From Hypanus sabinus (Eukaryota), in contig NW_026781614.1 of assembly GCF_030144855.1 (NCBI RefSeq), forward strand, positions 1 to 64,000: 64,000 nucleotides of DNA. Reading direction: 5' to 3'. Of the stretch, positions 19,596 through 54,337 are shown in pieces; the stretch's first letter is position 1, and each line of letters starts with the position of its first letter. The notes under the pieces were generated by a model. It saw nothing but the letters and a program-made list of their open reading frames with translations. It was not told the origin of the DNA and ran no database searches. A program made the translations under genes and the position numbers.

Positions 19596-19671
19596 ATGTC
19601 TACATTGTTTGAAAGGTACCGACATGTGGACAAAATAGTGAGCGTGTCCATTGTCGTCATTGGAGTTCCTG
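19596..19671 (+). CDS. Locus B exon 1 (MSTLFERYRHVDKIVSVSIVVIGVP+G)
   Basis: AAAATG start, donor CCTG|gtgagt. Homologous to the exon 1 copies at 33250 and 52213. Confidence 0.9.
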
Positions 19672-21084: not shown

Positions 21085-21992
21085 TGAATTTATTGGCGAT
21101 TGTGATCCTGTCCCGTGGAAAGTGCGGCCTCTCTACCTGCACCACTCGCTACCTGGTGGCCATGGCAGCGGGAGATCTGCTGACGGTAGTCATAGAGGTC
21201 CTTGGACGTCAAGTCTTAGATTATTACTTTCCGTGGAATTTTCTAAGGATTTACCCTGCATGCAGGTTTATCGAGGTACTGAGACTCACAGCCACATACT
21301 GCTCTGTCTGGTTCACCGTCACCTTCACTTTTGATCGGTTTGTCGCCATCTGCTGTCAGAAGCTGAAAACAAAATATTGCACCGGGAAAACTGCGGCTGT
21401 GGTTCTGACAATAACGGACGTGCTGTCCTTTCTGAAAAACGTTCCCCGCTACTTCCTCTGGGAACCCAGAGAGATAATCAACAACGTACCGTGGCGCTGT
21501 AGAGTGACAGCCAACACTTTCACTGATCTCGGATGGGTAGTATACGATTGGCTAGACATAGTTTTAACTCCATTCATCCCATTCGCTGTGATTCTGCTTT
21601 CCAACGCTCTGACGGTCAGGCACATTGTTGTGGCCAGTCGAGTCCGTAAGGGGCTGAGCGGTCAGAGCAAGGGGGAGAACAGCAGAGACCCGGAGATGGA
21701 GAGCCGGAGGAGGTCTGTGGTTTTACTCTTCACCCTCTCCGGCAGCTTCATTCTCCTGTGGATGACAAACGTTGTAAATTTCATGTATTATGAGATCAAA
21801 GGAATAGGATTTAAATTCAATGATTCCGAAAAAATCTTTCACATGGTCGGAGCCTTGCTGAAGAATTTCAGCTGCTGTACGAACACATTTATTTACGCGG
21901 TCACTCAGTCGAAATTCAGGGAGCAGGTGATCAGCGCGGTGAAATATCCGGTCACCTCGGTGATTCAGTTCATTACTCAGGCCGCGCACTGA
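21085..21992 (+). CDS. Locus B exon 2: GPR139-like GPCR (327 aa total)
   Basis: Acceptor ctctctccctgcag|TGAAT. Intact frame with AAGDL (TM2), DRF (TM3), ECL2 PWRC and TNTFIY (TM7); TGA at 21992. Confidence 0.93.
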
Positions 21993-32579: not shown

Positions 32580-33249
32580 TATGACGTCATGTTTGGCGCA
32601 GTCAATGTGGTCTGAAGTGTCTGTTCCCATTCTTCACCTGTGTTCTATGTAGGACAAACGGAAGGCAGAAGTTTATTTTCTCAGAGCAAACATTCCTCTC
32701 AGTGGTGGTGAACGTAGACTTCTTTACGACACAGGACAAAGTTTGGTACACTTCACTCGAACAACCAGAAGATGGTTTCTCCCGTCGGGAGTGGGAGATG
32801 AGGTGACGGTGAGATGAGCTCTGATTACAATCGGTGGAGAATCGGACTGGAGAGGCAGCTTTACTCTCAGTCAATCTGCTCAGCCGATGGACAAGATTCG
32901 CACTGACACAAGGTGAGGTGGAGAGTTGGGACTATTTGTGTGTGAAATAACATTCCCTTTGCTGGAGGAATGCCACTCGTAATTTACAACCCTGCGTAAC
33001 GTCACAGTTTCCATTGTTTTCAGTATCAGAGTTAATTCACTCAGTTAATCACGATTTTGCAACCCGGGATTGCATTCGGATGACGTAATCAGTTTGGAAG
33101 TAAATCAACAGATGTTTATTTTTAGATCTATTGAAACCTGTCCCAATTGAGTCGGTAAATGTTATTAAAACCCCAGGTATGTGCAGCCTTGACATTTCAT
33201 TCCTGGAGATCTCCTGTGGCACACGGGGACAGATCACCGACCAGAGAAA
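32580..33249 (+). promoter_or_regulatory. Shared upstream module of locus C
   Basis: TGACGTCA at 32582, GTAACGTCA at 32996, TATTAAAA at 33163. Homologous to B and E. Confidence 0.5.
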
Positions 33250-33325
33250 ATGCCTGAATTGTTTGATAGATACATACGAGTGGACAAAATACTGAACGTG
33301 TTCATTGTCTTCATTGGAGTACCTG
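33250..33325 (+). CDS. Locus C exon 1 (MPELFDRYIRVDKILNVFIVFIGVP+G)
   Basis: ATG at 33250, donor CCTG|gtgagt, preceded by the shared promoter module. Confidence 0.88.
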
Positions 33326-34371
33326 GTGAGTGAGCACAGATATTCGTGTTTGGCACTTCTGTCTGTAAGCCGGTGTGAGGTTGTTTGAGTTCATTTTACA
33401 AGCTTCCCGCTGATTTTCGTGGCAGTAATATACGTTAGTGATATTGAGCTTGTCTATTCAATATTCTGAATGTTCATATTTGATGACAAACCGAACTAAA
33501 CCCCTGACTCTCCTCTAACTCACGGGATCGACTCGAACGTTGTTCTTGCATTTGATGGAATTTTGTTCAGAGTGGTCCCAATGCTGGGGACAGGCAGCTC
33601 TCCGGGAATGAGAGACTAGAAATGTTTTACATTGTGGTGTTGACTGTTTATGTTATTGACCGGAGTGATTGACACCCTCTCCAGAGCTGCCCCAGTGTTG
33701 TGAGCCGGGAATCCTCCGGGAATGTGTGACTGGGAAGATTTAATGGCACGCTGTCCATGTTGACCCAGGAGGGCGGGCAGCACTCCGCGACGGTGTGACT
33801 TGGAGGGGTTTGCATTTTGAAGCTCTCAGACTGTGTTACTGATCAGATTGAACCCTTGCTCCTGTGTTTCTCCTCTCCCTGTGGAACCTGTCACAGTCGC
33901 ATTCAATAATGAATAACCAGTTTGTCAATAATCGGGTCTGATCTCCTGCACCTGAGTCACGGATCTACTGACGTAGGTTGTCAAAATGAGCTCCGTTGTT
34001 GAAGTAATCCATTTATGGAGACAATCGGCATCTGGTTACTATGTTGTTCCGGTTTTCCCTCTGAGACCCGACCTCAAGCCGTGCCCCGTATTGCCCTGAG
34101 GAAAGGCCTCGGTCGCATACTTTGAGCGTCTGTTCAACGTGGCGACTGCTGCTGAGTTCCCCCAGCATTTTGTGTGTGTTGTCTCCCTTTGCATACCTTA
34201 AGAACATAAGACAGAGGAGCAGAATTACACCATCTGTCCCATTGTGTCTGCTCCGCCGTTCAATCATGGCTGATCCATTCTGCTTCTTCTCCTCAACCCC
34301 AGTTCCCAGTCTTCTGCCCGTGAACTTTGATGCCATGTCCAAACAATGCCAGGTGTCTGTTCTCCCTGCTG

Positions 34372-35282
34372 TGAATTTAATGGCGATTGTGATCCTGTCC
34401 CGGGGAAAGTGCGGCCTCTCCACCTGCACCACTCGCTACCTGGTGGCCATGGCAGCGGGGGATCTGCTGACCGTAGTCATAGAGGCCCTTGTGCGTCAAG
34501 TCTTAGATTACTACTTTCGATGGAATTTTCTGAAAATTACCCCTGTGTGCAGGGTTATCGAAATACTGAGGCTCACAGACACATACTATTCTGTCTGGTT
34601 CAACGTCACCTTCACTTTTGATCGGTTTGTCGCCATCTACTGTCAGAAGCTGAAAACAAAATATTGCACCGGGAAAACTGCGGCTGTGGTTCTTACAACA
34701 ACCGGCGTGCTGTCCTCTCTGAGAAGCGTTCCCCGCTACTTCCTCTGGGAACCCGGACAGATAATCGACAATGACCGGTGGTTCTGTGAACTCACGGCCA
34801 ATACTTTTACTCACCTCGGATGGGTCGTATACGATTGGCTTGACATAGTATTAAATCGGTTCATCCCTTTCGCTGTGATTCTGCTGCTCAACTCTCTGAC
34901 GGTCAGGCACATTGTTGTGGCCAGTCGTGTCCGTAAGGTGCTGAGGGCACAGAGCAAGGGGGAGAACAGCAGTGACCCGGAGATGGAGAGCCGGAGGAGG
35001 TCTGTGGTTTTACTCTTCACCCTGTCCGGCAGCTTCATCCTCCTGTGGATGACGAACGTTGTAAATTCCATGTATTATAAGATCGCAGTAATAGGATTCA
35101 TGTATATCAATGATTCTGAATGGATCTTGCACATGGTCGGAGCCTTGCTGAAGAATTTCAGCTGCTGCCCGAACACATTTATTTACGCGGTCACTCAGTC
35201 GAAATTCAGGGAGCAGGTGATCAGCGCGGTGAAATATCCGTTCACCTCGGTGATTCAGTTCATTAATCAAGCCGCGCACTGA
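34372..35282 (+). pseudogene. Locus C exon 2: GPR139-like, frame open but splice acceptor mutated (probably non-functional or skipped)
   Basis: ctccctgcTG|TGAAT instead of ..cAG|TGAAT. The intron 3' part, including the tttaat branch region seen in B and D, is deleted. Private changes at conserved sites: WFNV, AIYC, NDRW, NRFIP, CPNT. Confidence 0.65.
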
Positions 35283-37189
35283 GCGAAGTCTGGAGGCGGC
35301 CGCAGTGTCTCCTGTCCGGGCTCCAGATCCTCACATTCCCCGCCTGATCTCTCATGTGTTATTTCCGGGGGAAGTGTTCAATGGACCGGCAGTACTTGGA
35401 CTTTCGGAGCAGCAGAGGATGGAAGGGTGTGCATCGTGACCGTGCCCCAGATCCTCAGATTCATCGCCCGATCTCCCTTTTCCGGGAGGACTATGTGCTT
35501 CGAAAAGTTTAACGACGGTGTTCCCAGGTGGAGGGAGGCTGTGGGCTGTGGTATCGGACGATTGGCCGGGCTGTGGCTTTCACGCTCTACTGGAGTGACC
35601 TGCTTTGTTTCACAGCGGGGCTACATATGGAAAAGGGGATGAGGGCTCAGTTAATATATGCATGTACGATTTTTTTCAATAAAACGAGTCCGAGTCGTTT
35701 CAAGTGTTTAACAAAAGCCGCAGCACTTTGTTTCCATTATGGAGAAACCAAATACAGTCGCTTTACACTCTGTTCGCTTGATCACGCCCCACCTCGGACA
35801 GCGAACAGAATTCAACGACAGATTTTGGGAATGATGTCGAGCATTTCCGCCTACGAACAGCTTTTGTCATTTGCCCCATTTTGCATTTCCCCACAAATGT
35901 ATCGTGACCGTGGGAGCTGTAGTGGGGGAAAGGACAATCAGTGTTGATTCACGCTCGGATTTGGAATCAGAGCACAGTCACTATTTGGTCTCCTGCAGAC
36001 TTGAATCCTCCCGTCCCGGTAACAAAAGACCTGACTCCTTAACGCGCCTGTCCAGGTTATTTCCGTCCTTTCTGAGTCGGGCGACCAGAGATTCACACGT
36101 TCTCCAGCTGTGATCTCACTGTGGTTAAAGTGAAAGAGTAACGACAATATTAACCAGGATTTTGGCATGAGGAGGGGAACTGTGCTATCGGGAGCTTGGC
36201 CAGGCTGGGGTTTTATGGCCCAACTGGAGTGACATGCTCAGGGGCTGGAGTTGGGAAAGGGGAGACAATTGATCTGTATTTTCATAGTTGTGCAATCGGC
36301 ACTATGTGCACCGTGCGATTGCAGTGGCCAGGGTCCGAATTCTGGCATGAGTGCACAATGTATGCTCGTAGGATTTTGGGAATAAAACGAGTCCGAGTTA
36401 TTTTAAGTGCTTAACCAGAGTCACAGCCTTTTGCTTCCATTACCGAGAAACCAAATGTAGTCGACCTACGCTCCCTGTACTTTTCCCTCCCACTTCGGAA
36501 AGCGATCACAATTCAATGACGGAGTTCGTGAATGATGTCGAGCACTTCATCTTACGAACAGTTTGTGTCATTTTGCCCCACTTTACATTTCCCCGCAAAT
36601 ATTTCATGACACTGTGGCTTCTAGCCACAGAGGCTAAATTCATTCTTTCATAACCCTTTGATTTGGGAACGGAGCACAGTCACTATCCAGTCTCCTCCTG
36701 ACTCGAGCCTCCCTTCCCGGTAACAAAAGTCGTGAATCCTTCCTGAACCTACCTAAGTTAATTACGTCCTTTCTGAGGCGGACGACCAGAGATTCACACG
36801 GTGCTCCATCTGTGTACTGACCAAACCGGAAAGGGTCAGAACAGGAACAGGCCATTCTGCTCACTAAGTTGTTCTGAACCAATTGAACTCTTCATTTAAT
36901 GCTTAGCTGAACCAATCACGTCTGCACACAGAAGCTCGTGTTCCCTCCATTTCCCCAATATTGATGTGGATTCCAAGATCCTCTGTCCCCTCTGCTTGCA
37001 CAATCGCTACCGCAATTCACTCCAGACACCAACCACTATGAGTATGAAAAGAAATACTTGCAACGCTCTTCCCACGAAAAATTATGTGTCAGGTTTGAAA
37101 TGTCTGTGTCTTACAGGTTGATTTTTTCCCACTTCAGTCTCGGGAAAAGATACAATATGACACTGAATTAAAAACAGACAAGTAAATAG

Positions 37190-38741
37190 GAAAGTAGGAG
37201 AGTCTGAAGGGCCCATGAGAGGGCCTTGGCGGGCAGGATTCAGGAAAACCCCGTCATTCTACGGGTATGTGAAGAGCAAGAGGATAAGTCGTCAAAGAAT
37301 AAAACCTGTCAAGTGTGACAGTGGGAAAGTGTGTATAGAACCGGAGGAAATGGCAGAGATACCTAATGAATAATTTAATTCTGTATTCGCTATGGAAAAG
37401 GATCTTGGTGATTGTACTGATGACTCACAGCAGACTGAAAAGCTCCAGCATGTAGATTTTAAGAAATCGGATGTGCTGGAGCTTTTGGAAAGCATCAAGT
37501 TGGGTCAATCGCCGGGATCGGATGGGATGCACCCCAGTCTACTGTGGGAGGCGAGGGAGGAGATTGATGAGACTCTGGCGAGGATCGGCATCACCAAAGG
37601 GGAAGAGAGAGGATCCGGAGGATCGGAGAGTTGCGGATGTTGTTCTTTTATTCAAGAAAGGGAGTGGAGACAGCCCAGGAAATTATAAACTAGTGAGTTT
37701 TACCTCTGTGGTCTGTACGTTGATGGAGAAGATCCTGAGAGGAAGGTTTATGATGTATAATATGATTATGAAATCTCACCATGGCTTTGTCAAGGAGAGG
37801 TCGTGCCTTACGAGCTTGATTGAATTTTCTGAGGATGTGACTAAACACATTGATTCAGGAAGAGCAGTGGATGTAGTGTGTATGGATTTCCGTAAGGTAT
37901 TTGACAAGTTACCCCATGCAAGGATACTTAAAAGTAAAGAGGCATGTTATCCAAGGAGACATTGCTTTGTGGATCCAGAAGTGCATTGCCCGCAGAAGGC
38001 AAAGAGTGGTTGTAGCCGGTTCATATTCTGCTTGGAGGTCGATCAACAGTGGAGTGCCTCAAGAATCTGTTCTGCGACCATGACTCTTCGTGGTTTTTAT
38101 AAATGACCTGATGAGGAATGGGTTAGTAAGTTTGCTTATGACACAAAGGTTGGATGTGTTGTTGGTAGTATGGACGGCTGTCAGAGGTTACAGAAGGATT
38201 TTGATAGGATGCAGAACTGTGCTGAGGAGTGGCAGATGGAGTTCAACCCACATAAGTGTGAAGTGGTTCATTTTGGTAGGTCGACTATGATGACATAATA
38301 TAGTATTAATTGAAAGACTATTGGCAGTGTGCAGGATCAGAGGGTTATTGGGGTCCGAGTCAATCGGTTGCTCAAACAATTGCGCAGGTTGATTCTGTAG
38401 TTAAGAAGGCGTACGGTGTATTGTCCTTCATCAATCGTGGAATTGAATTTAGGAGCCGAGAGGTAATATTGCAACTATATAGAACCCTAGTCAGACCACA
38501 CTTAGAGTACTGTGCTCAGTTCTGGTCGCCTCACTACAGGAAGGATGTGGAAGCCATAGAAATGGAGCAGAGGAGATTCACAAGGGTATTGCCTGAATTC
38601 GAAAGAATACTTTTTGAGAATAGATTGAGTGAACTCAGCGTTTTCTAGGTGGAGCGACGGAGGATGAGAGGCGGCCTGATAAAGGTGTATAAGATGATGG
38701 GAGGCATGGATCGGGTGGATAGTCAGAGGCTTTCTCCCAGG
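37190..38741 (+). mobile_element. CR1 ORF2 fragment, truncated at both ends
   Basis: PGNYKLVSFTSVV, SCLTSLIEF, VRPHLEYCAQFWSP. Confidence 0.88.
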
Positions 38742-39484
38742 TCATGTGACACGTTCTGCAAAACGTCGCGACATCATTTCTCAAACCAGGCCATTAAAAA
38801 TGCTTGTAACCTTGTTCACAATTTTCATCACACGCTGATTTCTACCCAAGGGCAGACTATGGGCTAATATTAAAATCTCATTTCGATAAACTATAGGAAA
38901 AACTAGCTGGTGAACAACCTTCCATTCATCACTTGCAGGAATTGTAGGCAATCTCCACTTCCTCATTAAAACTCCTTCAACAAAATAATATCCTACTGGC
39001 TCCTTATCAACCTCACTATCCAGAAGAGCTTGTTCCTTTAATCTGATAATCCCAGGGTCTCTGCTCTGCTCTGCTATCATCTCCCTCCGAGACAGAGACA
39101 AATCTTCAGTGTCAGACTTACTCAAAGAATTGTGTTCAAACAATGGTTAAAAAGTTTCCGAAACATCCTCAAAACTCGAATCCTGAGCTGACCAGTCATG
39201 GATAACAACCGCATTCTGCACATCAAGCTTTTTTACCCACAGCTCGAGTTACAACACAGAAAGAATCTTTGTTTGAATACATCCGTCGTTCCTCAGACTT
39301 TATTGTCAAATGCACTTCAGGAAAAACTTGCCCGTCAGCCAAGTCATTTCCTAACAGTAAAGAAACATCATTCACAGGTAAGCTAGCTTGTAGTCCTACT
39401 TTACCAAGTCTTATGAAAAACACTGACCTTAAATTTACTTTATGCAAATGTACAGGCATAAGGGCACTCCCGTCACCTCGCGGT
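38742..39484 (-). mobile_element. Gypsy internal fragment (protease end directly followed by integrase zinc-binding region; Gmr1-like)
   Basis: LPVNDVSLLLGNDLA then EQSRDP..GVLMRKW..ILILAH..FCRTCH. Confidence 0.8.
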
Positions 39485-40328
39485 AGAAGTAATCCATTAT
39501 CGGAGCCACTCAGCATCTGGTTACTACGTTGTCCCGGTTTCCCCTCAGTGTTCCGAATTAAAGTAGTGCCCCGTTTGCCCTGAAGAAAGGCCTCGGTCTC
39601 GTACTTTGAGTGTGTGTTCAACGTGGCGACTGCTGCTGACTTTCCCCAGCATTTTCTGTGTGTTGTCTCCCTTTGAATAGCATAAGACCATAAGACATAG
39701 GAGCATGAGTAGTCCATCTGTCCCATCGTGTCTGCTCCGCCGTTCAATCATGGCTGATCCTTTCTTTTTCTTCTCCTCAACCCCAGTTCCCAGCCTTCTC
39801 CCGGTGACAGTTGATGCCATGTCCAATCAAGAACCTATCAATCTCTGTCTTAATCACAGCTACATGTGGCAACAAATTGTGGCTAAAGAAATCACTCTTC
39901 TGTTCTGAGGCTGTGCCCCCTTATCCTAGACTCCCCCCCCCAAGGAAAACATCCTTCCCACGTCTTCTTTTACCATTCAGAAGGCTTCAATCAGATCCCC
40001 CTCTGATCCCCGGAGACCGTCTCGGCCCCGTCAGATGCTGAGTTTCCAGAGGTCTGGGCAGTCACGGTTAAATAAGTGACGGGAACCGGGATGAGCACAG
40101 ATCGTTGTTGTTCATGGCGCTCATGTTTAACCCCGACGATTACCGGCACATCACCTTATCTCCACACTGAAGGTAGGTCGGAGGCAGTGTGACCCATGTT
40201 TGGTGTTGGATGAGCAGCCGTTCACCGGATCCAGCGCTCCTAACATCTGGCTGAAACTCGAACATGTGTACATTCCCGGAGAATGAGTTTAATAATGCCC
40301 GGTTTCTGTTCTCTTCGCTCTCCCTCAG

Positions 40329-41236
40329 TGAATTTAGCAGCGATTATGATCCTGTCCCAGGGAAAGTGCGGCCTCTCTACCTGCACCACTCGCTACCTGG
40401 TGGCCATGGCAGCGGGGGATCTACTGACCGTAGTCATAGAGATCCTTTTGCGTCAAGTCTTACGATATTATTTTCCGTGGAATTTTCTGAGGATTACCCC
40501 TGTGTGCAAGGTTATGGAGGTACTGAGGCACACAGACACATACTGTTCTGTCTGGTTCACCGTCACCTTCACTTTCGATCGGTTTGTCGCCATCTGCTGT
40601 CAGAAGCTGAAAACAAAATATTGCACCGGGAAAACTGCGGCTGTGGTTCTGTCAACGGCTGGCGTGCTGTCCTTTCTGAGAAGCTTTCCCCGCTACTTCC
40701 TCTGGGTACCCAGAGAGATAATCAACAATGTACCGTGGTTCTGTGAACTCACAGCCAATACTTACACAGACCTCGGGTGGGTAGTATACGATTGGCTCGA
40801 TATAGTTTTAAATCCGCACATCCCGTTCATTGTGATTCTGCTGCTAAACGCTCTGACGGTCAGGCACATTCTTGTGGCCAGTCGTGTCCGTAAGGGGCAG
40901 AGGGGTCAAAGCAAGGGGGAGAACAGCAGGGACCCGGAGATGGAGAGCCGAAGGAGGTCTGTGGTTTTACTCTTCACCCTCTCCGGCAGCTTCATCCTCC
41001 TGTGGATAACGAACGTTGTAAATTCCATGTATTATGAGATCAAAGGAATAGGATTCAACTTCAATGATTCTGAATGGATCTTTCACATGGTTGGAGCCTT
41101 GCTGAAGAATTTCAGCTGCTGCACGAACACATTTATTTACGCGGTGACTCAGTCGAAGTTCAGGAAGCAGGTGATCAGCGCGGTGAAATACCCGTTCACC
41201 TCGGTGTTTCAGTCGATCAATAAAGCCGCGCACTGA
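40329..41236 (+). CDS. Locus D exon 2: intact GPR139-like exon with no own exon 1
   Basis: Acceptor ctctccctcag|TGAAT, intact 908-nt frame. Upstream intron homology stops at ~39485 against a Gypsy fragment. Confidence 0.8.
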
Positions 41237-44200
41237 GCGGAGCCGACAGGTGGCAGCTATGTCACCTGTCCAGGCCCCAGATCCTCATATGAAGCGCCGA
41301 TATCCCTTGTTCTATTTCCGGGAGGTGTGTGTGTGTGTCCGTGTGTGTGTGTGTGTGTGTATGTGTGTGAATGAGAGAGAGCGGAATGTGGTTATTTTGA
41401 AAGAGTGTCGAAAAGTTTAACGACGTTGTTGCCAGGTGGAGGGAGGCTGTGGGGGTACGATTGACCGGGCTGTGGCTTTCACGCTCTACTGGAGTGACCT
41501 GCTTTGTTTCACAGCGGGGCTGCATATGGAAAAGTGGATGAGGGCTCAGTTAATATATGCTTGTACGATTTTTTCAATAAAACGAGTCCGAGTCGTTTCA
41601 ATTGTTTAACAAAAGCCGCAGCGCTTTGTTTCCATTATGGAGAAACCAAATACAGTCGCTTTACACTCTCTTCGCTTGATCAGGCCTCACCTCGGAAAGC
41701 GAACACAATTCTATGACGGATTTTGTGAATGATGTCGAGCATTTCCGCCTACGAACAGCTTTTGTCATATGCCCCACTTTACATTGCCCCACAAATGTCT
41801 CATGATAGTGGGACTTATTGCGACGGAGGGGACAATCATTGTTACTTCGCGCTCATATTTGAGATCAGAGCACAGTTACTATCCAGTCTCCTCCTGACTC
41901 GAGTCCTCCCGTCCCGGAAACAAAAGACCTGAATCCTTACCGCGCCTGTCTGGGTTAATTCCGTCCTCTCTGAGGCGGGCGACACGGTTCTCCCGCTGTG
42001 GTCTGGGTTAATTACGTCCTTTCTGAGGCGGCGACCAGAGATCCACACGGTTCTCCAGCTGTGGTCTCACCAAACCAGAAAGGGACAGAACGGGAACAGG
42101 CCGGTCTGCTCAGTGCGTTGCTCTGACCCAGTTGAAATGTTAATGTAATGCTCAGCTGAACCAGTCCCATCTGCCCGCAGAAGGTCCACATCCCTCCATT
42201 TGCACAATATGCATGTGGATTGCAATATTCACCATCGCCTCTGCCTGCGCATTCAGTCCAGGCACTCACCATTATGAGTATGGAAAAAAAAGACGTGCAA
42301 CGCATATCTCCCGAAAACTATGTTCAGGTTTAACATTACTCTGTTATTCAGGTTGTTGTTTTTTTTTCCGCGTCAGTCTCGGGGAAAGAAACAAAATGAC
42401 TCTAATCTAAAAAGAAATTTCCCTGCTGTCAGAGTGCATGAACAAACCTTCACTATTCTGCCGGCACACAAACTTATTTTAAATTAGTCTAAGTACAAGG
42501 GCACGAGGTCGCGCCTGGACTCATAAAGAGCATTAAGCGGGAAATGTTTCCAGCGCCTGGCGGGATTTATTGCACATTATTCAGAGAGAGGAGATTGGTA
42601 TACTGGCTATATGACCAATATATTCGGGTTCGCCAAACCCCACTCCCCTCGGAAATCAAAAGGGAAATAAATGGATGAAAAACACGGAACATAGAAATAT
42701 TTGTGAAACCACAAGCCACACTCCATAAACGCCATTATGTCCAATCATAACGCGGAAACATCTTCATTCGTCAACGAAAAGTGAGACATCACAGCATAAC
42801 CCGACGCTCCTGGAGCAGCGAGAGGCGTGGCAGTCTCAATTTAATTGACAAGGTTAAATAGAAGACCCCGGTAATGATCCGCCCTAGTTGAGATAACAAT
42901 TAGTCAATACAGGCGCCAGAGAAACGGAGAAGCCCAACGCTCTTCGACACGTGGCAGAGGCCAGGAACGGTAGGTGGCGCTGTGTCCACGGCAAAATCTG
43001 CCGGGATCTTATTGCAGGGCGGAGCAGGATCGTCAGGTCAGATGACCAACTCCTGCTCTGATTATTCCGTTTATTATGGAAAGGAGTAAGAGGAGAGAAA
43101 GAGGGAGGCTGGGGGCATACAGAGGGCAGAGATAGGAAGAGATACTGATATCTTCGGAGGAGATCGACACAGAGGAAAAAGAGAAAGAGAATCAGCCGAT
43201 CAGGTCCTGGGACAGCAGAGAGAACTCTGCAGATTAACGACACCAAACCGCTCAGCAGTAAACCGTACCCTCCACATCTTACCACCTCATGCAGCCCCTC
43301 CGCACAGGAAACACTGGCCACCCCAATAAGTTAACCGCCAGCATCGAAGGGAAAAGGAAAAGGACCCAACTGTACCAATGCTATTTTATTAGAGCGAGGC
43401 TTTTGCAATCGAACAGCCATGTGATGCGGGATTTCAACGAGCTGTAATGGCGGGGGAGGGGTCTTAGTGAATGAACCCTTGCGACTCTACTGACCGAATC
43501 GAATCAATGCAGTTTTATTTCAGCGACGTTTCTGCAGTCAACGAGCTGTGATAGTGGAAATGGTGTGGGGGGTGTGGGGAGGGCGGAGTACTGACAGAAC
43601 CCGTGTAATCCTATTCGCTGGAATGATGAGTCAGAGCTGATTAGGAAAGCAGTATGGCCAGTGCAGCTTAATCCTTCCCTCAAACCTCCGATGAAGGGTC
43701 GGTTTGGAAGTGGGCATTTTTCGATGCACAGTGAGATCCAGTAGATAATCCTCACGCTGATCATGAACCACCTGGGTGAGTGGGGCGTCTAATCAATAGC
43801 CCGTCGTGTATCCCTCCCCCCACCCCCGTGTTACAGCCGACTGATTATCGGAGGGGTGTGCGAGCACGGGCCGATGGTGCTGGGAGTTCAGGATCTATTT
43901 GTTGGGAGATCCGCGGAGAGGGGGCGGTAGTTGAAGCAGAGCGAGGTCGATGGGATGGTGAGATTGGGGCGGGTCCTCACTCTCTCCGGATGAGGGGAAC
44001 CTAAGGGACACCCCTCATGTAGTTTCCATCGTGCGAGCAGGGGCGGCTCTCCACAACCTGGAGGCTGTTTTGGGTGTCTCTGATATCAGTATGTGATGCA
44101 GGGAGCGGAGAAGAGTTAGTGAGTGATTGTCATTACATCGCCCCTCCACACATCCTCCACCCACTTCTGCACCACTCCCCATCTCCGTCGCCCCTCCCTT

Positions 44201-44924
44201 CACAATGACTCACTCGGACTCCCAGAACTCCTCTCTCCAGGAAGGAGATCCGCGCCTCCGTCATCCCTCCATTTGCTCTGCACTTTAGTGTGTTGGGCGC
44301 ACCTTCCCTCCCCTGAACAGCTCCCCTGTACCCTACACCGTCTCCGGCAACCAGTATCTACCCACTTTAGTGATGTCCAGTTTCTCGGTCTACGTCAACC
44401 TTCCCTCCACTAAACTCATCCCACCCTGTCACCCCTTCCTGACCAAGTGTCTATCCCACCTCCGTTAACCACTCCCTCTTCAATACCCCAACGAAACCTC
44501 GTCAGCCACTCTCGCTCCTCCACACATCCCCGAATCATTGGCCGTCTCTTTGCTCATCCCCCTCCTTCCCCTACACCCCACACCGTCTTCGCCAACTCCC
44601 CTCCCCTACACACGTCCACGTGTCCATTACTGCGTCCTTGGCCAACATCTCTCCCGTCTCCGTCAGCTCATCCTCCGCCCACACCCCTCATAAATTTGTG
44701 ACGCTCCTCTGTGCGGACATTGCCTTGATCAGGATTCATGGTGCCGAATCTTCCGACTGACGAAGATTCATCGCCTGACAGTTACAGATTGAAGGTCCTC
44801 TCCACGACAGGCTTCACGGCAGGACAGTGGGGCGCAGAGCCGAAACAGCGTGGAAGCTGCAGAGACCGGGAGCGAGAACAGGAACAATCGTGTCAAGTGT
44901 CGGCCAGGATTAGAAATCGGGCCG

Positions 44925-45390
44925 CCGTGATCCAGGCCCGGGAGCTGGGAGTGTGTTTCCGAGAGGGAGGAACGGCCCGAGGTTTGGATGGTAGAGGTCC
45001 GGGTTTCGGGACCGGCGACGAAGGGCTCAGCTCGCCGCTCGGCCAGGCTTACTGGTCCCTGGGCTGAACTCAGATTACCGTGATCCAGGCCCGGGAGCTG
45101 GGAGTGTGTTTCCGAGAGGGAGGAACGGCCCGAGGTTTGGATGGTAGAGGTCCGGGTTTCGGGACCGGTGACGAAGGGCTCAGCTCGCCGCTCCGCCAGG
45201 TTTACTGGTCCCTGGGCTGAGCTCAGATTACCGTGATCCAGGCCCGGGAGCTGGGAGTGGGTTTCCGAGAGCGAGGAACAGCCCGAGGTTTGGATGGAAG
45301 AGGTCCGGGTTTCGGGACCGGTGACGAAGGGCTCTGCTCGCCGCTCGGCCAGGTTTACTGGTCCCTGGGCTGAACTCAGATTACCGTGAT
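44925..45390 (+). repeat. 153-bp tandem repeat, 3 near-identical copies
   Basis: CCGTGATCCAGGCCCGGG at 44925, 45078 and 45231; partial copy at 45384. Confidence 0.95.
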
Positions 45391-45584
45391 CACAGCTCCG
45401 TGGCGACGGACGCTCGGGGTCTTCAGATGTTTGGTTATTCCTGCTGTTTGCCCGGATTGTGTGTTTTTCTCTTTGCTCTTTCTGTGTTCGTCCATCTTTT
45501 CACTTCTTTATTTTGTGGCTGCCTGCTGAGAGAGGAACTCAAAAATAAACGAACTTGGACTTCGACTTTGAAACACCACCGGAG

Positions 45585-48500
45585 GAGAACAACAGAGAAA
45601 AACTACAGCACACTCCAGGCCCTTCGGCCCACAAGCTGTGTCGAACACGTACTGACTTTACAAATTACCTCGGGTTACCTGCAGCACGCTATCTTTGTAA
45701 GCTCCATGTACCAAAACAAGAGTCTCTAAAAAGATCCTATCGCATCCGGGTCCACCATCACTCTGTGAGTCAAACGTTTACCCCTGACATCTCCTCTGTC
45801 CCTACTCCCCAGCACCTTAAAACTGTGCCCTCTCGTGCTAGCCATTTCAGCCCTCGGAAAGAGCCTCTGTCTATCCACACGATCGATGCCTCTCATCATC
45901 TTATACATCTCTCATCCTCCACCGCTCTAAGGAGAAAAGACCACGTTCACTCAACCTATTCCTGTAAGGGATGCCAATCCGGGCAACAACCTGGTAAACC
46001 TCCTCTTCACCTTTTCATATAGTTTTCACATCTTTCCTGGTGTGAGGTGAATAGTACTGAGCACAGTACTCCAAGTTGGGTCTGACCAGAGTCTTAAATA
46101 GCTGTAACATTACCTGTCGGCTCTTAAACTCAATCCCACCGTTGATGAAGGCCAATGCACCGTCTGCCTTCTTAACCACAGAGTCAACCTGCGCAGCAGC
46201 TTTGAGTATTCTATGGACTCTGACCCCAATATCCCGCTGATCCTCCACACTGCCAATATACTTACCATTAATGCTATTTATCATCACATTTGACCGACCA
46301 AACTGAACCATGTTACACTTATCTGGGTTGAGCACCATCTGGTAATTCTCAGACCAGTTTTACATCCTATCAATATCCCGCTGTTACCTCTGACAACCGT
46401 CCAGACTATCCATAACACCCACAACCTTTGTGTCATCAGCAAACTTGTGAATCCATCCCTCCACTTCCTCACCCAAGTAATTTATAAAACACGCAAAAGG
46501 ACTGGTACACAGAACACAGAGAGACAGTTCTCAACACAAGGTAACGGCAAACGGCCGGACCTAACCAGCGCAGGCGAGGACACAGAGACGGTTCCCAACA
46601 TAATGTAGCAACAAACGGCTGAACCTACCCATCGAATGCATGGACACAAAGAGTCAGTTCCAAACCACAAAAGTCAGTTCCTCTTCGAGACACTTCAAGG
46701 CTCCGGTCTTGCTCAGGCAGTAGGACTTGACAGCGATACAGACAAAGTTGCAGGCAAGGCTTCATAAGGAAGGGGATCGAAAGGGAACAGTCCTACAAAT
46801 GAAGCTGACCCAGGAGCTATTTATGTATCCAGCCCAAACTGAGATTCAGTTGCCTCGATTAGAGCACCAAGCAGAATGAGGGAATACCGGAAAACTCGGA
46901 ATAACGATGAGCCGGACCGTGAACCGGAATGTGGTCTTCACGGACCGGATGATGACACTGTTCCCAATTTATGCTTTCAAGCTTTGCTTGATAGGTTTAT
47001 AGTTCCGCTTACTTCAGTTAAACTCTTTCCTAATTTGTCTGTTCCTATCGCTCTCCAATGCTATGGTAAAGGAGATAGAGTTGTGATCATTATCTCCAAA
47101 ATGCTCACCCACTGAGAGATCTGACACCTGACTAGGTAAATTTTTCGATACCAGATCAAGTATAGCCTTCCCTGTTGTAGACCTATCTACATATCGTGTC
47201 AAGAAACCTTCTTGAACACACCTAACAAAATCCAGCCCATCTGATCCCCTCACTCTAGGGTCTTGCCAATCCATATTTGGGAAATTAAAATCTCCCACCA
47301 CGACAATCCTGTTACTATTACACCTTTCCAGAATCTGTCTCCCGATCTGCTCCTCGATGTTCCTGTTACTGATGGGTGGTCTATAAAAAACACCCAGTGA
47401 AGTTATAGACCCTTTCCTGTTTCTAACGTCCAGCCACAGAGATTTCGTAGACAATTCCTCCATGTCTTCCTCCTTTCCTACGGCCGTATCACTATCTCTG
47501 ATCAACAGTGCCATGCCCCACGTCCTTTGCCTCCCTTCCCGTCCTTTCTGAAAAAATCCTGAATCTAAATCTAAACTCTGAAGTCTGCAATGGACACAAC
47601 ATCATAGCTCCAAGTACTGATAGACGGCTAAAGCTCAACCACTTTGTTTCTGATGCGACTTGCATTAAAATAAGCACATCTCAGACCATCAATCTGAGCG
47701 CGTCCCTTCTCGATCAGCTGGCTATCCTCCCTCTCGCACTGTCTCAAAACTTCCTCTATCTGTGAGCCATCTGCCCCTTCCTTCAGTTTGCTCCCACCCC
47801 CATTGATCCCAGTTTAAACTCGCCTCAATAACCTTGGCAAATCTCCCTGCCAGGTTATTGGTCCCCCTGGGAATCAAATGCAACCCGTCCTTTTTGTACA
47901 GGTCACTCATGCCCCCCAAAAAGTGCCAGTGATCCAGAAATCTGAATCTCTTCCTCTTGCTCCAATCCCTCAGCCTCGCATTTATCCTCCTCCTCACTCT
48001 ATTTCTATACTCACTGTCGCGTGGCACAGGCGACTACCTTTCTGCTTCTGCTTCTCAACATCCTTCTTAACTCCTTCTTGTGTGCTTTCAGAACATCCTC
48101 CCCTTTCCTGCCTATGTCGTTGGTACCAATATGTAACACGACCTCTGGCTGTTCTCCTTCCCAGTTCAGGATATCGTAGACACGATCAGAAACTTCGCCG
48201 ACCCTGGCATCTGGGAGGCAAACTACCACCCGAGTTTCTTCCCTGAGTGCAAAGAATCGCCTGTCTGCCCCACCCCCAACCCCCGGCAACTAGAGAGTAC
48301 CCAATCACGACGGACTTTCTCTTCCTTTCCCTACCTTTCTGAGTCACATGACCACCGTTGCTACCCCCAGGTAGGCCATCCCCCCAACAGTACTCAAACA
48401 GGAGTACTTATTATCAAAGTGTACAGCCACATGGGTACTCTCTAGCCTCTGACTCCGGCCCTTCCCGCTCCAGACTGTTACCCACTTATCGGTCTAGCCA

Positions 48501-48850
48501 GGGCCCGGAGTGACTACCTGTCCATAGCTTCTTTTCATCACCTCCTCACTCTCCCTGAACAGACGAAAGTAATCGAGATGCATCTCCAGTTCCCTAACGT
48601 GGTCCCTAAGGAGCTGAGTCTCCGGGACATCTCATATCTGACACCCGGTCCAGAAAACCCGACTCATAGACATACTTCTGGTTTCTATTCCTCACAGCTA
48701 ACGTACCCGTTATCGCTGAAGACCGAATGAGTCAAAGTCCTACCACTCTGCCTCAGATCATTGTGTCGATGACCGCTCTGCGAGGGAGTGTTTCCCTTCT
48801 CTGCCTGAACCTTGCCTGCTACTGAGCTCACGGTTTTTGCTCCGGTTATA
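45585..48850 (-). mobile_element. Long CR1 LINE (ORF1 SGNH-esterase, ORF2 endonuclease, RT end), internally deleted, with an LTR-like insert at ~46495-46957
   Basis: VCLPDARV..VLHIGTNDIGRK..KDGLHL (ORF1); GVFYRPP..VGDFNFP (endonuclease); VRPNLEYC (RT end). Confidence 0.88.
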
Positions 48851-49349
48851 AACGCTGATAGGCCACGCACATATTGTTTGGACCAGTCAGAGTTGAAAGA
48901 CACAGATACACAAGGCTGGAATGGACAGTACCACGAAACAATGCTGGTTGTAGCCCTGTACAATGACCAATACGAAGGTGACCCAGGTAGGTCAGGTGAC
49001 CTTGGGATGGAGACGCACCAGTTTAGTTAATTCGGACCGCAGGAAGAGTAGGGCCGATGAGCCTCAAGACACCAGAGATCAAGCATTGTCGATAAGGGGG
49101 ACCCCACGAGGAACGCCTGACCTGCGCAGTCTCCCTTCCCGGGCAATAGCATGTTTCTTCAGAGACTGCTCTGCGATGGTCAGGAATTCGAGTCGGGGGC
49201 ACACAGGGAGATAGCTTGCGAAGCCACGTGATTTTTAATGGAGGCAATAAAGTTACTTGTGGGCAAATGCAGATTCCCTGTGCTTCACTGACCATTATTA
49301 CAAGGTAAGATTCATGAAACAACACAGGATCCGTGGAGGTCTGGAGAGG

Positions 49350-50112
49350 CAAATGTGAAAGTGTAGCTGTATGTGTGCGTGTGTGTTTTTATCTGTGTTT
49401 CTAAGTAGGTGTGCGTATCAGTGTGTTGTGCACATGCGTGTGTCTTTTTATGTTTGTAAGTATTTGTGGCTGGGTGTTTTTCTGTCTGGGAGTCAGTATG
49501 TGTGTGTGTTTCTGTGTCTGCCTTTGTGTGATTGGTTGTGTCTGTGTGTAGCTGGTAGTTTGCGGGACTGTGTGTGGACGTGCGCGTTTGTGTGTGTGTT
49601 TGTGGGACTGTGTTTGTTCTCGTTGTGTGTCTCATCCTGTCTGTGTTTTTCCTTTCAGTTTCTTTGTATGTTTCTCTGTGTGTCTGTGTTGCGCTCTGTG
49701 ACTGTGCGATGGTGTATTCCAGTGCGTGATGGTGTGCGTATCTCGGTGTATGTGTGTCTGCATGTTCATGTGTTTATGCTGGTGCCTGTTGATATACGTG
49801 TGTGCGCGTGTGCACGCTGTGTATGTGCGCGCGCATCTGAGTTTCTGTGCGCGTTTGTTAGTTTGGGCGTGCATGTGTGCATCTGCGTCTGCCTCTGTAT
49901 GTTTTATTTGCCATTGTGAGTGAGCCCGTGTGTCTCTGAGTCTCTGTGTGTGTATGTCGAACTGTCTGTGTTCGGAGAGGTGTATGTGTCTTTGTCTGGT
50001 TATCTGTGTCTATGGTGTGTGTGTATGATGAGACCATGTGTTGGTGTTCACGTCTGTGTGTGTACTTGTGTGAGCGAGTGTTTCCGTGTGTGTCGGGGTT
50101 AATTTGTATGTA
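49350..50112. repeat. Degenerate (TG)n low-complexity tract
   Basis: Direct inspection. Confidence 0.9.
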
Positions 50113-51059
50113 TGAGGGAGGGAGATACATCAACAGCCATTCCACGTCGTACAAACAAGGATCCACACACCTCACTGTCCGGTTTGGTCCATTGTCTCTG
50201 CCTCCTCCTGTCTGACTGAACTCGTGTCCGTGTACACTGACTTCATTTTACCCGCCTCGGTAGAGTGCAATCCCGTCCACATCCATGTCTCTGCACATGG
50301 CATCGATCTCTTCAACAAATTAAAATCCCTGGAAACGATTGCTTCACTGGGCATGGCTGCCCATTACCGAAAAACAGCAACCTTCTCCACCGCCCCTCCC
50401 CACTAACCAAGAAGGTTTTAAAGAGCTCCGCTTCCTTCTCGACAACAGACGCAACGGGTTCCCCACCAACTCCCGTTATTCAGTCACAGAACACGACAAT
50501 AAAGAAACAGACGCTTTTGCTCCTTTCCACCGTCCCGAGACTCAGGACTGAAACAGGACCGTAGCCCAATCAGACTCCTCTTGTGCTTATCCAAACTCTT
50601 CTTCAATTCAGCCAAACCCACATCCACCAATTCCGCCGGCATCTCGTCCCGCTGTCGCGCCGCCCTCAGAGTGACCAACTTGCCCTCAGATTCCCCTGAA
50701 ATTTTACCTTTTTTACCCTAAACATGTGACCTCCTGTTCCCGTCCTACCCAACCTCACAGGAAAAATATCCTACCTGCATTTACCCTCTCAAAAGCGCTG
50801 AGAATGGGTGATACAACACGATTTCACAAGTAACAATCGCATAACACATTTCAATAATTTTGAGACTGACACATTTGATGGTTCAGACGCTGATGTTAAT
50901 TCGCACAGATGGTCAAAAAGATTCTGAGATGAGAGACACCAGAAGCCCAAGGTTACTGTTGTGAGAGTTGACACGTGTACGGGCAGGGGTTGAAGGTTGA
51001 AGGATCAGCTGCTGGGAGATTACATCCGTTCAGTGTGGCGATATGGTTCGCCTGCTCCT

Positions 51060-52212
51060 GTGAATACCTTTCTCAATTCTCGGTACGTGTCAGAGAAATA
51101 GAAGGCAGCAAGATTTCCTTTCTCAGAGCAAGCCTTTCTCTCAATGGCGACGAACGTAGACATGTTCCACACCCATGACAAAGTCTGGTACATTTCACCC
51201 GAACACAAACAAGCTGAGGACAGCTACTGGTCATCGGAAGTGAGATCTGCGGATGGTTACTGGAAATCGGGCGTGAGATCTGAGGATGGCTACTGGCAAT
51301 CAGGAGTGAGATCTGAGGATGTTTACTGGTAGTAGGGAGTGAGATCTGAGGACGGGTAGTGGCTATCCGGAGGGAGATCTGCGGATGGTTACTGGTAATC
51401 GGGAGTGAGATCTGAGGACTGTTACTGGAAAACGGGAGTGTGGTCTGAGGACGGTTACTGGAAAACGGGAGTGTGGTCTGAGGACGGTTACTGGAAAACG
51501 GGAGTGTGGTCTGAGGACGGTTACTGGAAAACGGGAGTGTCGTCTGAGGACGGTTACTGGAAAACGGGAGTGTGGTCTGAGGACTGTTACTGGAAAACGG
51601 GAGAGTGGTCTGAGGATGGTTACTGGTTATCGGGAGTGAGATCTGAGGATGTTTACTGGTAGTAGGGAGTGAGATCTGAGGACGGGTAGTGGCTATCCCG
51701 AGGGAGATCTGCGGATGGTTACTGGTAATCGGGAGTGTGGTCTGAGGACTGTTACTGGAAAACGGTAGTGTGGTCTGAGGATGGTTACTGATAATCGAGA
51801 GTGAGATCTGAAGATAGTTTCTCCTAAATTCAGTCGGTCTCCTGAACCGATGTCCAAGATTGGCATGACATAATATTAGGTGTTGATGTGGTTCTATTGG
51901 TGCTTGGAAAGGTATACCCTTTGTTGGAAAAAATGCCACTCGCTATTTACAACACTGAGTACCGTCATAATTTCCATTGTTCGCAGTTCCATAATTCATT
52001 CACTAAATTAACTATAGTGATGCACCGCGGGGATTCCACTTGTGTGATATAATCGGATCGAAAATAACTTAAACATCTGTAATTTTAAATTTGTTAAACT
52101 CGGTCCCTGTGGAGTCGCAAAATGGTATTAAAACCCTAGGCATATGCTGCCGCAGCACCCCATTCCGGGAGATCGCCTGTGGTACACGGGCACAAATCAC
52201 CGGCCAGAGAGG
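51060..52212 (+). promoter_or_regulatory. Shared upstream module of locus E, interrupted by a minisatellite
   Basis: Homologous to B and C on both sides of the 30-bp array. TATTAAAA at 52126. Confidence 0.45.
51212..51815 (+). repeat. 30-bp minisatellite, ~20 copies
   Basis: Unit CTGAGGAYGGTTACTGGWAAWCGGGAGTGWGRT-like. Confidence 0.95.
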
Positions 52213-52288
52213 ATGCCTGCATTGTTGGATAGGTTCTTGAGTGTCTATAAAGTATCGAACGTGTTCATTGCCGTCATCGGAGTTCCCG
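52213..52288 (+). CDS. Locus E exon 1 (MPALLDRFLSVYKVSNVFIAVIGVP+G)
   Basis: ATG at 52213, donor CCCG|gtgagt, homologous to B and C exon 1. Confidence 0.88.
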
Positions 52289-53237: not shown

Positions 53238-53409
53238 NNNNNNNNNNNNNNNNNNNNNNNNNNNNNNNNNNNNNNNNNNNNNNNNNNNNNNNNNNNNNNN
53301 NNNNNNNNNNNNNNNNNNNNNNNNNNNNNNNNNNNNNNNNNNNNNNNNNNNNNNNNNNNNNNNNNNNNNNNNNNNNNNNNNNNNNNNNNNNNNNNNNNNN
53401 NNNNNNNNN
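53238..53409. other. Assembly gap in the 3' end of the locus E intron
   Basis: Run of N, 8 bp upstream of exon 2. Confidence 1.
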
Positions 53410-53417
53410 CTCTGCAG

Positions 53418-54337
53418 TGAACTTAGTCGCGATTGTGATTCTCTCCCGGGGAAAGTGTGGCCTCTCTACCTGCACCACTCGTTACCTGGTGGCCATGGCA
53501 GCGGGGGATCTATTGACCATTGTAATCGAGGTTATTTTGCGTCAAATCATTTACAGGTATAATTATCATTCGTGGATTTTTCTGAACATTACCCCTGTGT
53601 GCAGGGTTGTCGAAGTACTGAGGCAGACAGCCACCTACTATTCTGTCTGGTTCACCGTGACCTTCACTTTTGATCGGTTTGTCGCCATCTGCTGTCAGAA
53701 GCTGAAAACAAAATATTGCACCGGGGAAACTGCGGCTGTGGTTCTCACGACAACCGGCGTGCTGTCCTTTCTGAGAAGAGTTCCCCGCTACTTCCTCTGG
53801 GAACCCAGACAGATAGTCAACAATGTACCATGGTTCTGTGAACTCAGGGCTAACATTTTCACTGACCTCGGGTGGGTAGTATACGATTGGCTCGATATAG
53901 TTTTAAATCCGTTCATCCCTTTCGTTGTGATTCTGCTGCTCAACGCTCTGACGGTCAGGCACATTGTTGTGGCCAGTCGTGTCCGTAAGGGGCTGAAGGG
54001 TCAGAGCAAGGGGGAGAACAACAGGGACCCGGAGATGGAAAACCGGAGGAGGTCTGTGGTTTTACTCTTCACCCTCTCCGGCAGCTTCATCCTCCTGTGG
54101 CTGACGTGGGTGTTAAATTTCATGTATTATGAGATCTCAGGGTTACGATTCAATTTCAATGATTCTGAATGGATCTTTCACCGCGTCGGAGTCTTGCTGA
54201 AGAATTTCAGCTGCTGCACGAACACATTTATTTATGCGGTCACTCAGTCGAAATTCAGGGAGCAGGTGATCAGCGCGGTGAAATATCCGATCACCTCGGT
54301 GTGTCAGTTCATTACTCCGGCCGCGCACGGAGAATAA
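53418..54337 (+). CDS. Locus E exon 2: GPR139-like GPCR (331 aa total)
   Basis: ctctgcag|TGAAC just after an N gap. Intact frame with DRF and TNTFIY; ends AAHGE*. Confidence 0.9.

Follow-up and report, generated by a model that had tools for sequence, protein, structure and literature searches.

Complementary damage in two tandem GPR139-like receptor copies of Hypanus sabinus: two decaying relics or one receptor spliced from both

Introduction

Conjoined genes arise by read-through chimeric splicing between neighbouring loci. When a terminal 3' splice site is defective, the poly(A) site downstream of it becomes weaker and such splicing is favoured, so that upstream exons could be routed to an exon farther downstream (PMC13501980). 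Chimeric splicing between neighbouring olfactory receptor loci has been confirmed by RT-PCR (PMC3566163). These studies mostly regard the partner loci as intact, and one chimera or more was called a by-product of erroneous splicing (PMC13501980, PMC3566163).

A second described system is the tandem family of chemoreceptor-like G-protein-coupled receptors (GPCRs) that evolves by gene birth and death and contains pseudogenes and copies of mosaic make-up. Mammals carry just one GPR139, together with GPR142. In sharks and rays the GPR139-like family has expanded enormously (2350 database hits), and relatives there carry the database name 'probable G-protein coupled receptor 139'; our literature search for this elasmobranch expansion found no paper.

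Here we analysed a window of 64,000 nucleotides of Hypanus sabinus DNA (contig NW_026781614.1), in which two neighbouring copies, C and D, resemble each of these systems in part and also depart from both. Unlike the partners of conjoined genes, C and D are both defective, and a chimera, predicted here from the DNA, would be the sole full-length route. Unlike in ordinary birth-and-death clusters, the lesion of each copy complements that of the other, and on their common strand the two stand in the right order, which makes rescue of one by the other conceivable.

Results

A tandem cluster of two-exon receptor genes

The window holds GPR139-like receptor genes of a two-exon type, clustered in tandem. 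According to blastn within the window, there are four exon-2 copies (B, C, D and E) and three copies of the promoter and exon 1 (B, C and E), with a copy spacing of 13–19 kb. B has its exon 1 at 19596–19671, and its product is 327 aa. Exon 2 of all four copies matched the Pfam domain 7tm_1 (PF00001; E = 1e-18 to 2e-23), and in canonical two-exon members the hydrophobic first half of helix 1 is encoded by exon 1. Among solved structures, the top match to D exon 2 was human GPR139, an orphan class A GPCR (7VUG-7VUJ; E = 2.9e-11). The match spans the entire seven-helix core, yet it is distant (46.6 bits); the neuromedin-B and ghrelin receptors followed (E = 1e-8 to 1e-7). Judged by this similarity, the ray cluster is class A (rhodopsin-like) and belongs to the GPR139-like clade, with a distant relationship to mammalian GPR139 that does not imply orthology. 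Most class A receptors carry NPxxY, whereas this family carries NTxxY.

Because the family is so large, neighbouring defective copies are to be expected. Exon-1 sharing shows no sign of being a family habit, since no two of the 117 hits with an exon-1-type N-terminus had the same one.

Copy C has a conserved 5' end and a dead acceptor

All features below lie on the plus strand unless stated otherwise. The promoter and 5' UTR of C (32900–33249) align blockwise with those of B and E and contain a TATTAAAA box ~85 nt upstream of the ATG. Exon 1 (33250–33325; 76 nt, 25 codons plus 1 nt) starts with ATG, encodes MPELFDRYIRVDKILNVFIVFIGVP and is followed directly by the donor GTGAGT (33326–33331). 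Private changes numbered 32 in the C promoter versus 27 in that of B, and 5 in exon 1 versus 7 in B, counts that lack the statistical power to demonstrate purifying selection. They revealed no extra decay, in agreement with the sequence-only reading, which had described this promoter and exon 1 as intact.

Direct inspection of the window also bore out the claim that the exon-2 acceptor of C is broken: the assembly sequence at 34369–34371 is CTG instead of the CAG of B, D and E, so that TG occupies the acceptor position 34370–34371. The C 3' splice site bears three lesions, more than the sequence-only reading had recorded: the change from CAG to CTG, an intron deletion of ~195 nt that ends ~30 nt upstream of the acceptor, and a pyrimidine tract shorter than that of the paralogs.

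Three routes by which C might work alone were considered: a cryptic acceptor, rare use of TG, and a T at 34370 that is an assembly error or polymorphism. The C intron contains a SINE-like high-copy repeat (34150–34349; depth 4-8x10^5 in the relatives' contigs), also found in the B and D introns. Inside it lies the pseudo-acceptor CTCAACCCCAG|TT, from which a cryptic exon would begin at 34303. This site is strong, with a branch-point-like CTGAT ~31 nt upstream, a pyrimidine content of 0.84 and an AG, and exon 1 joined to it stays in frame and would give 351 aa. Upstream of the dead acceptor, the frame of C continues without a stop for 103 codons, the longest open run in the C intron. Against this product stands its 23-residue insert, VPSLLPVNFDAMSKQCQVSVLPA, which falls mid-helix 1, just before the conserved Asn, and would place polar residues in the membrane span. 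As to the second route, TG is usable as an alternative 3' splice site in a few U2-type introns. As to the third, the T rests on the assembly letter, and a single-base error is an unlikely explanation because the damage to this splice site is multiple.

Contigs of relatives were aligned to a 6,000-letter stretch of the window, with ~93-97% identity in its unique parts. They differed in letter from the window at 302 positions, and 34370 was not among the 40 of these that were listed. Because of the high-copy repeat at 34150–34349, these contigs do not bridge to the C acceptor, and over exon 2 they are swamped by contigs of paralogs.

Exon 2 of C is open and altered at conserved positions

Exon 2 of C (34372–35282; 911 nt, one extra codon) is an open frame with neither a stop nor a frameshift. 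It had been said to carry several disruptive substitutions. This is apt for conserved residues, since 11 of its 19 private replacements hit conserved family positions (columns at least 80% conserved), but not for the reading frame, which is unbroken. T103N, C115Y, P188R and T292P affect positions conserved at 97-100%, and they speak against C working alone.

At 34858 (P188R), the window letter appears to be common to single-copy-depth contigs of two relatives. This noisy signal hints that the damage to C may be old, a further point against a working C. Taking the intact exon-2 frame together with these replacements and the insert, we consider it improbable that C functions by itself.

The interval between C and D has probably lost gene bodies

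C is followed by its 3' flank (flank I, 35283–36119), with AATAAA at 35678; a hexamer scan confirmed this signal, which had been raised as a possible early terminator. Next comes an orphan third 3' flank of the family (flank II, 36241–37188), with AATAAA at 36381 and 72-73% identity to the B and D flanks. Flank II had been overlooked by the sequence-only reading; the relatives' contigs contain both the junction that it forms with flank I and the one that it forms with the adjoining CR1 fragment. That fragment, a 5'-truncated CR1-like LINE in sense orientation (37190–38740), carries AATAAA at 37298 and a weak RVT_1 hit (E = 1e-6), reaches very high copy depth in the relatives' contigs and has further copies in the window. 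A probable LTR-retroelement pol fragment follows on the minus strand (38741–39479). Its 120-aa ORF resembles Integrase_H2C2 clusters at 0.93, which ranks as a lead, and a Pfam search of the element gave no hit. Of the two element names proposed for the sequence that replaces the 5' part of D, CR1 is supported and Gypsy is a lead.

The two copies had been explained by duplication of a terminal exon. A simple tandem duplication of this kind was rejected, as it leaves flank II unexplained. The orphan flank and the CR1 and LTR-element fragments between the copies point instead to deletion of gene bodies from this interval.

Copy D has a clean exon 2 and no family-type first exon of its own

Homology of D begins abruptly at 39483, adjoining the retroelement fragment, with the last ~840 nt of the intron (39483–40328). 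It ends in a canonical CAG acceptor (40326–40328), followed by an exon 2 with an intact frame (40329–41236; 908 nt), as had been read from the letters. A poly(A) signal, AATAAA, lies at 41576–41581 and is homologous to those at 35678 and 36381. A scan of the interval covered 444 AG sites, and the D acceptor has the highest pyrimidine content of them all, tied with a pseudo-acceptor at 39787 inside the intron remnant. Neither blastn nor a pattern search revealed a family-type exon 1 between C and E, and the pattern search found no exon-1-like donor at 33316–52279; a separate first exon of family type for D, which would have spoken against a joint gene, was thus absent from both searches.

D could instead be expressed alone as a single-exon gene that starts in retroelement debris or in the intron remnant. 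The remnant has in-frame ATGs at 40283 and 40295, which would yield 317 or 313 aa. The ORF 40283–41236 passes in frame through the acceptor; a 1-nt deletion in the pyrimidine tract, unlike the situation in B, brings these ATGs into frame. An annotated isoform (P0024) of a Hypanus sabinus family member likewise has an intron-derived N-terminus. On the other side, an in-frame ATG has a chance of one in three, no promoter is evident, and with the substitute N-terminus, MSLIMPGFCSLRSPS, helix 1 would lack its hydrophobic first half. Expression of D alone is, in our estimation, very improbable. Neither C nor D alone encodes a canonical 327-aa receptor.

Exon 1 of C and exon 2 of D would join into one receptor frame

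Computation in the window reproduced the proposed join in full: 33250–33325 plus 40329–41236 gives 76 + 908 = 984 nt and 327 aa without a stop, the same length as B, with matching phases across an intron of 7003 nt (33326–40328). The structural preconditions of a chimera are present: phase, length, donor, acceptor, strand, and no other exon 1. As far as the DNA goes, splicing of C exon 1 to D exon 2 could yield a single complete receptor. In this model, the transcript from C would skip the dead exon 2, pass the poly(A) sites and splice to D, giving a seven-helix receptor under selection.

Besides the exact fit and the pyrimidine-rich D acceptor, read-through after acceptor loss can be explained by the coupling of splice site and poly(A) site (PMC13501980), and the olfactory receptor chimeras offer a precedent (PMC3566163). 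The proposed intron itself holds counter-signals. It contains three undecayed AATAAA hexamers, two of them bona fide family poly(A) signals (35678 and 36381) and one in the CR1 fragment (37298), and strong pseudo-acceptors at 34303 and 39787. Such signals would compete for the C donor and transcript and fit two decaying copies. Moreover, a selection bias operates, in that a truncated copy draws attention only if its frame is intact.

In the transcriptome of one relative, which expresses spliced paralogs, no contig lay on C exon 1 or the C 3' flank. This fits decay and counts against the chimera, as weak evidence: it consists of contigs only, from an unspecified tissue, searched with a 6,000-letter stretch that excludes D exon 2. 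In the sequencing-run search, no run from the species itself and no RNA run matched, and no run contained >24% of the words.

Substitution patterns weakly favour use of D exon 2

Neither C nor D has a frame-disrupting lesion in exon 2; their lesions are the splice site of C and the missing 5' part of D. The dN/dS on the D branch was 0.48, below 1 at p = 0.03-0.045 and matching the intact paralogs. On the C branch it was ~0.6, indistinguishable both from 1 and from D (C = D, p about 0.6). Private replacements at conserved sites were 11/19 in C versus 4/13 in D (p = 0.17), and 11/19 in C versus 13/52 in the other three copies pooled (p = 0.02), with no excess in D. The comparison of C and D that the sequence-only reading had called for therefore returned a constrained D and an apparently more relaxed C, but the contrast between them is not significant alone. 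The D replacements at conserved positions include R36Q, L216Q and E305K, which we classed as charge-changing and which are in keeping with decay.

The probability that a neutral exon 2 keeps an open frame was ~0.2 if it evolved neutrally for one third of the time that has passed since C and D split, ~0.045 for two thirds and ~0.009 for the whole. By the first two values, open frames need not imply function; the last counts in favour of the chimera. Overall, the evolutionary tests weakly favour the model of the sequence-only reading.

The kinship of C and D is less clear than had been thought. Their 3' flanks, called near-identical, are 88% identical by measurement (flank I versus 41408–41983). 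Noncoding identity supports C+D (86-88% between C and D versus 75-81% to B), as does the protein tree with moderate support (93/89). The derived residues TDT, NSMYY and KYPF are indeed common to both copies, but exon-2 nucleotides do not single out this pair. Site patterns numbered 5 for C+D, 8 for B+C and 6 for C+E (= B+D), and no more than 3.6 lnL units separate the three topologies. Clear exon-2 sisterhood of C and D at the nucleotide level was rejected on these grounds; similarity in exon 2 is a mosaic along its length, and the exon-2 tree is unresolved.

Discussion

Our leading account, held tentatively at a little short of an even chance, is that C and D are two decaying relics. The dead acceptor and intron deletion of C, the abrupt start of D beside a retroelement, and the orphan flank all fit it, and the dN/dS values of C and D are inseparable. 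C and D would be tandem GPR139-like members that acquired complementary damage through gene birth and death. C would be a transcription unit that is complete but has had its terminal 3' splice site destroyed, and its exon 2 is starting to gather replacements at conserved sites. D would be a 5'-truncated copy in a stretch from which other gene bodies were deleted and into which fragments of retroelements came. Both would be young relics, with reading frames as yet unhit.

From the anatomy and substitution patterns, which were observed directly, we infer the fates of transcripts. Those from the C promoter would mostly end within C, via the cryptic acceptor at 34303 or unspliced, and would terminate at AATAAA 35678 or 36381. 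It is quite possible that part of the read-through is spliced to D exon 2, and this would be a by-product without selection.

Several observations sit less easily with two relics. D has the dN/dS of an intact paralog, and C, unlike D, has an excess of hits at conserved sites. D also retains its acceptor, pyrimidine tract and full open frame despite having no exon 1, the promoter and exon 1 of C show no extra decay compared with B, and loss of a terminal 3' splice site promotes read-through and chimeric splicing (PMC13501980). A constrained D, a 5' end of C with no extra decay and the loss of the splice site between them fit a D exon 2 that is in use via C exon 1. We nevertheless regard the working chimera as rather unlikely, and two decaying copies as slightly more likely. 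To the same limited degree, a working receptor made from two individually dead tandem paralogs may represent complementary degeneration of exons rather than of whole genes.

If the chimera is true, the locus would be a clear case from nature in which two pseudogene-like loci complement each other by splicing. It would then also caution annotators, as ORF- or homology-based pipelines would report a pair of single-exon genes or of pseudogenes and overlook the one product of full length. If the chimera is false, the locus is an ordinary birth-and-death snapshot in a very large, undescribed shark and ray GPR139-like family, and it would still serve as a natural experiment on what becomes of a donor after the death of its terminal acceptor: a cryptic site, the old poly(A) signal, or read-through.

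A tandem cluster of GPR139-like receptor genes

The window holds a tandem array of class A GPCR genes, all on the same strand. A Pfam search matched 7tm_1 to exon 2 in four of them (B, C, D, and E). The closest database proteins came from rays and sharks and carried the annotation 'probable G-protein coupled receptor 139', the top match being P0001, a family protein of Hypanus sabinus (85%); the database protein search found no protein on record identical to the window copies. Human GPR139, the nearest solved structure, was a distant match (E = 2.9e-11). Genes of this family have two coding exons: exon 1 of 76 nt, made up of 25 codons and one further base, which contributes the first half of helix 1 and is followed by a GTGAGT donor, and exon 2 of about 908 nt. 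The exons lie at 19596-19671 and 21085-21992 in B, 33250-33325 and 34372-35282 in C, and 52213-52288 and 53418-54331 in E, and D consists of exon 2 (40329-41236) without exon 1. By blastn within the window, there were four copies of exon 2 versus only three of the promoter and exon 1, and a pattern search of 33316-52279 found no exon-1-type donor.

Two further, divergent family members border the cluster on both sides, one on the minus strand (3849-5574; exon-1-like donor at about 5574 and clean TTGCAG acceptor near 4786) and one on the plus strand (61795-63915; exon-1-like donor at 61795). In copy E, a run of N (53238-53409) ends 8 nt before exon 2, leaving most of the 3' splice region unreadable, and at the position matching the poly(A) signal of the family (about 54500), AAGAAC stands in place of AATAAA.

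Lesions in copies C and D

The sequence-only reading proposed that C and D form one working gene, with C exon 1 spliced onto D exon 2. Several of its premises were borne out. The C promoter can be aligned in successive blocks with the promoters of B and E, exon 1 and its donor are present, and the exon 2 acceptor reads CTG, with T at 34370, instead of CAG. About 195 nt of the C intron is missing just upstream of this dead acceptor, and the pyrimidine tract there is shorter than in B and D. Exon 2 of C, said to be disrupted, has a frame that is still open, with one extra codon and no stop; its damage consists of private replacements at conserved columns. Upstream of the acceptor, the same frame is open for 103 codons (34062-34371), the longest open run in the C intron, with in-frame ATGs at 34266 (338-aa ORF) and 34335 (315 aa); this run may reflect chance or an alternative C product.

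D has, as proposed, a canonical CAG acceptor, an exon 2 with an intact frame, and no exon 1 copy by blastn, and it resembles the paralogs only from a sharp boundary at 39483 onward, some 840 nt upstream of the acceptor. Expression of D alone from this intron remnant could start at in-frame ATGs at 40283 (317 aa) or 40295 (313 aa), but the substitute N-terminus is without the hydrophobic half-helix that exon 1 gives, and we regard this reading as very improbable. P0024, another Hypanus sabinus family protein, is annotated as isoform X1, and its N-terminus is translated from intron sequence that continues across the acceptor, which makes it comparable in kind to the 317-aa single-exon ORF of D.

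The interval between C and D

The 3' flank of C (35283-36119; AATAAA at 35678) is followed by an older, orphan 3' flank copy with no gene attached (36241-37188; AATAAA at 36381). The orphan shares 72-73% identity with the flanks of B and D and was probably left behind when a paralogue was deleted. Next come a CR1-like element that is truncated at its 5' end and lies in sense orientation (37190-38740), with a weak RVT_1 match and very high copy depth, and a retroelement-like fragment (38741-39479). On its minus strand, this fragment has an ORF similar, at the level of a lead, to the zinc-finger regions of retroelement integrases. Of the CR1 and Gypsy sequences said to have replaced the 5' part of D, the former was thus supported and the latter is such a lead. 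The proposed origin of the pair, a clean duplication of the terminal exon in tandem, leaves the orphan flank unexplained and was ruled against. The orphan flank implies that gene bodies were deleted between C and D, so D could well be a once complete gene that later lost its 5' part.

Contigs of three related organisms cross both the junction of the two flanks and the boundary of the orphan flank with CR1 at about 93-97% identity; this portion of the arrangement is therefore older than the divergence of those organisms from the window's species. In all three, a single contig runs from 35271 directly to 35440, leaving out 168 nt at the beginning of the C 3' UTR, which is either a species indel difference or a paralogue's contig.

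Noncoding DNA places C and D closest to each other (86-88%, versus 75-81% to B). Their 3' flanks, described as near-identical, are 88% identical. The protein tree, which was moderately supported, had the form (B,((C,D),(E,P0001))). Exon-2 nucleotide site patterns numbered eight for B+C, six for C+E (= B+D), and five for C+D; the three topologies differed by <3.6 lnL, and the nearest neighbour changed among windows along exon 2. The derived residues said to be shared by C and D do exist, but with so mosaic a signal they are by themselves no evidence of a special C-D history.

Splicing and poly(A) signals

The exon phases match as claimed: joined across a 7003-nt intron, C exon 1 and D exon 2 would give 984 nt and 327 aa, the same totals as in B. 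None of the 444 AG sites from the C donor to the D exon has a better pyrimidine tract than the D acceptor, which shares the top rank. Defects in terminal 3' splice site recognition increase read-through and chimeric splicing (PMC13501980), and olfactory receptor genes are known to form chimeric transcripts across neighbouring loci (PMC3566163). The proposed C-D chimera would be mechanistically reasonable. The proposed intron contains three AATAAA motifs (35678, 36381, and 37298), including the one at 35678 raised as a caveat; those at 35678 and 36381 are the family's own poly(A) signals, with no decay seen.

A putative competitor for the C donor is a strong pseudo-acceptor at 34303 (CTCAACCCCAG, then TT), inside a SINE-like repeat and with a branch-point-like CTGAT about 31 nt upstream. 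Because of the C intron deletion, this site is 69 nt from exon 2 and in frame, and its joining to C exon 1 predicts 351 aa with 23 extra residues within helix 1. C could be rescued by itself, through this cryptic site, use of the TG, or a wrong or polymorphic base, which we consider improbable. The other AG sites nearest the dead acceptor (exon starts 34353 and 34410) are frame-shifting. The pseudo-acceptor of the repeat is also found in the B intron (20810) and the D intron remnant (39787), so normal copies must be able to skip it. The SINE-like repeat is common to the introns (C, 34150-34349; B, about 20690-20850; D, about 39640-39830); its C copy had a contig depth of 4-8x10^5 in genome sets of three related organisms and was present in their RNA.

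Reads from relatives

A search for sequencing runs that match the window turned up none from its own species and no RNA run; read evidence came from relatives' short contigs over 33150-39149. X21, a relative's run tentatively taken as RNA, contains family transcripts. One 276-nt contig matched from 34374 onward (91%) and had a further 177 nt unlike this stretch; we read these as exon 1 and 5' UTR of a paralogue, so that the homologous acceptor is used in paralogues. Depth in X21 was zero on C exon 1, the 5' part of the C intron, and the C 3' flank (one relative, contigs only, tissue unspecified), which is weak negative evidence on C transcription. At 34858 (P188R), single-copy-depth contigs in two relatives seem to carry the window's letter, a noisy signal that hints that C decay predates the split from them.

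Selection on exon 2

We fitted our own GY94 model (F3x4 frequencies, 301 codons, four copies). Background dN/dS was about 0.40. On the D branch it was 0.48, rejecting 1 under every topology (p = 0.033-0.045); on the C branch it was 0.60-0.63, with 1 not rejected (p = 0.16-0.22) and no difference from background (p ~0.33). In the C versus D comparison suggested by the sequence-only reading, equality was not rejected (p ~0.6). Private synonymous and non-synonymous substitutions numbered 8 and 22 in C, 12 and 21 in D, 20 and 20 in B, and 21 and 32 in E. Scored against 120 homologues, 11 of 19 private replacements in C fell at columns at least 80% conserved, including T103N (100%), P188R (99%), and C115Y and T292P (97%), versus 4/13 in D (altered conserved positions R36Q, L216Q, and E305K), 5/15 in B, and 4/24 in E (C versus the rest, p = 0.02; C versus D alone, p = 0.17).

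With a C-D noncoding divergence K of about 0.185 and six indel events per 1086 nt, a neutral exon 2 would stay open with P ~0.009 over the whole time since the C-D split, ~0.045 over two thirds, and ~0.2 over one third of it. Exon 2 was therefore under constraint in both C and D through much of its history; the two may nevertheless have been inactivated recently and independently. A maintained gene of C exon 1 and D exon 2 would suit the constraint on D and the matching phases, but it would have to pass intact poly(A) signals and the competing pseudo-acceptor; we consider it rather unlikely, and leave a small share to something else. The reading we favor, at somewhat short of an even chance, is that C and D are a pair of young relics, complementary to each other, left by gene birth and death in this receptor family, and that any chimera would be a by-product.
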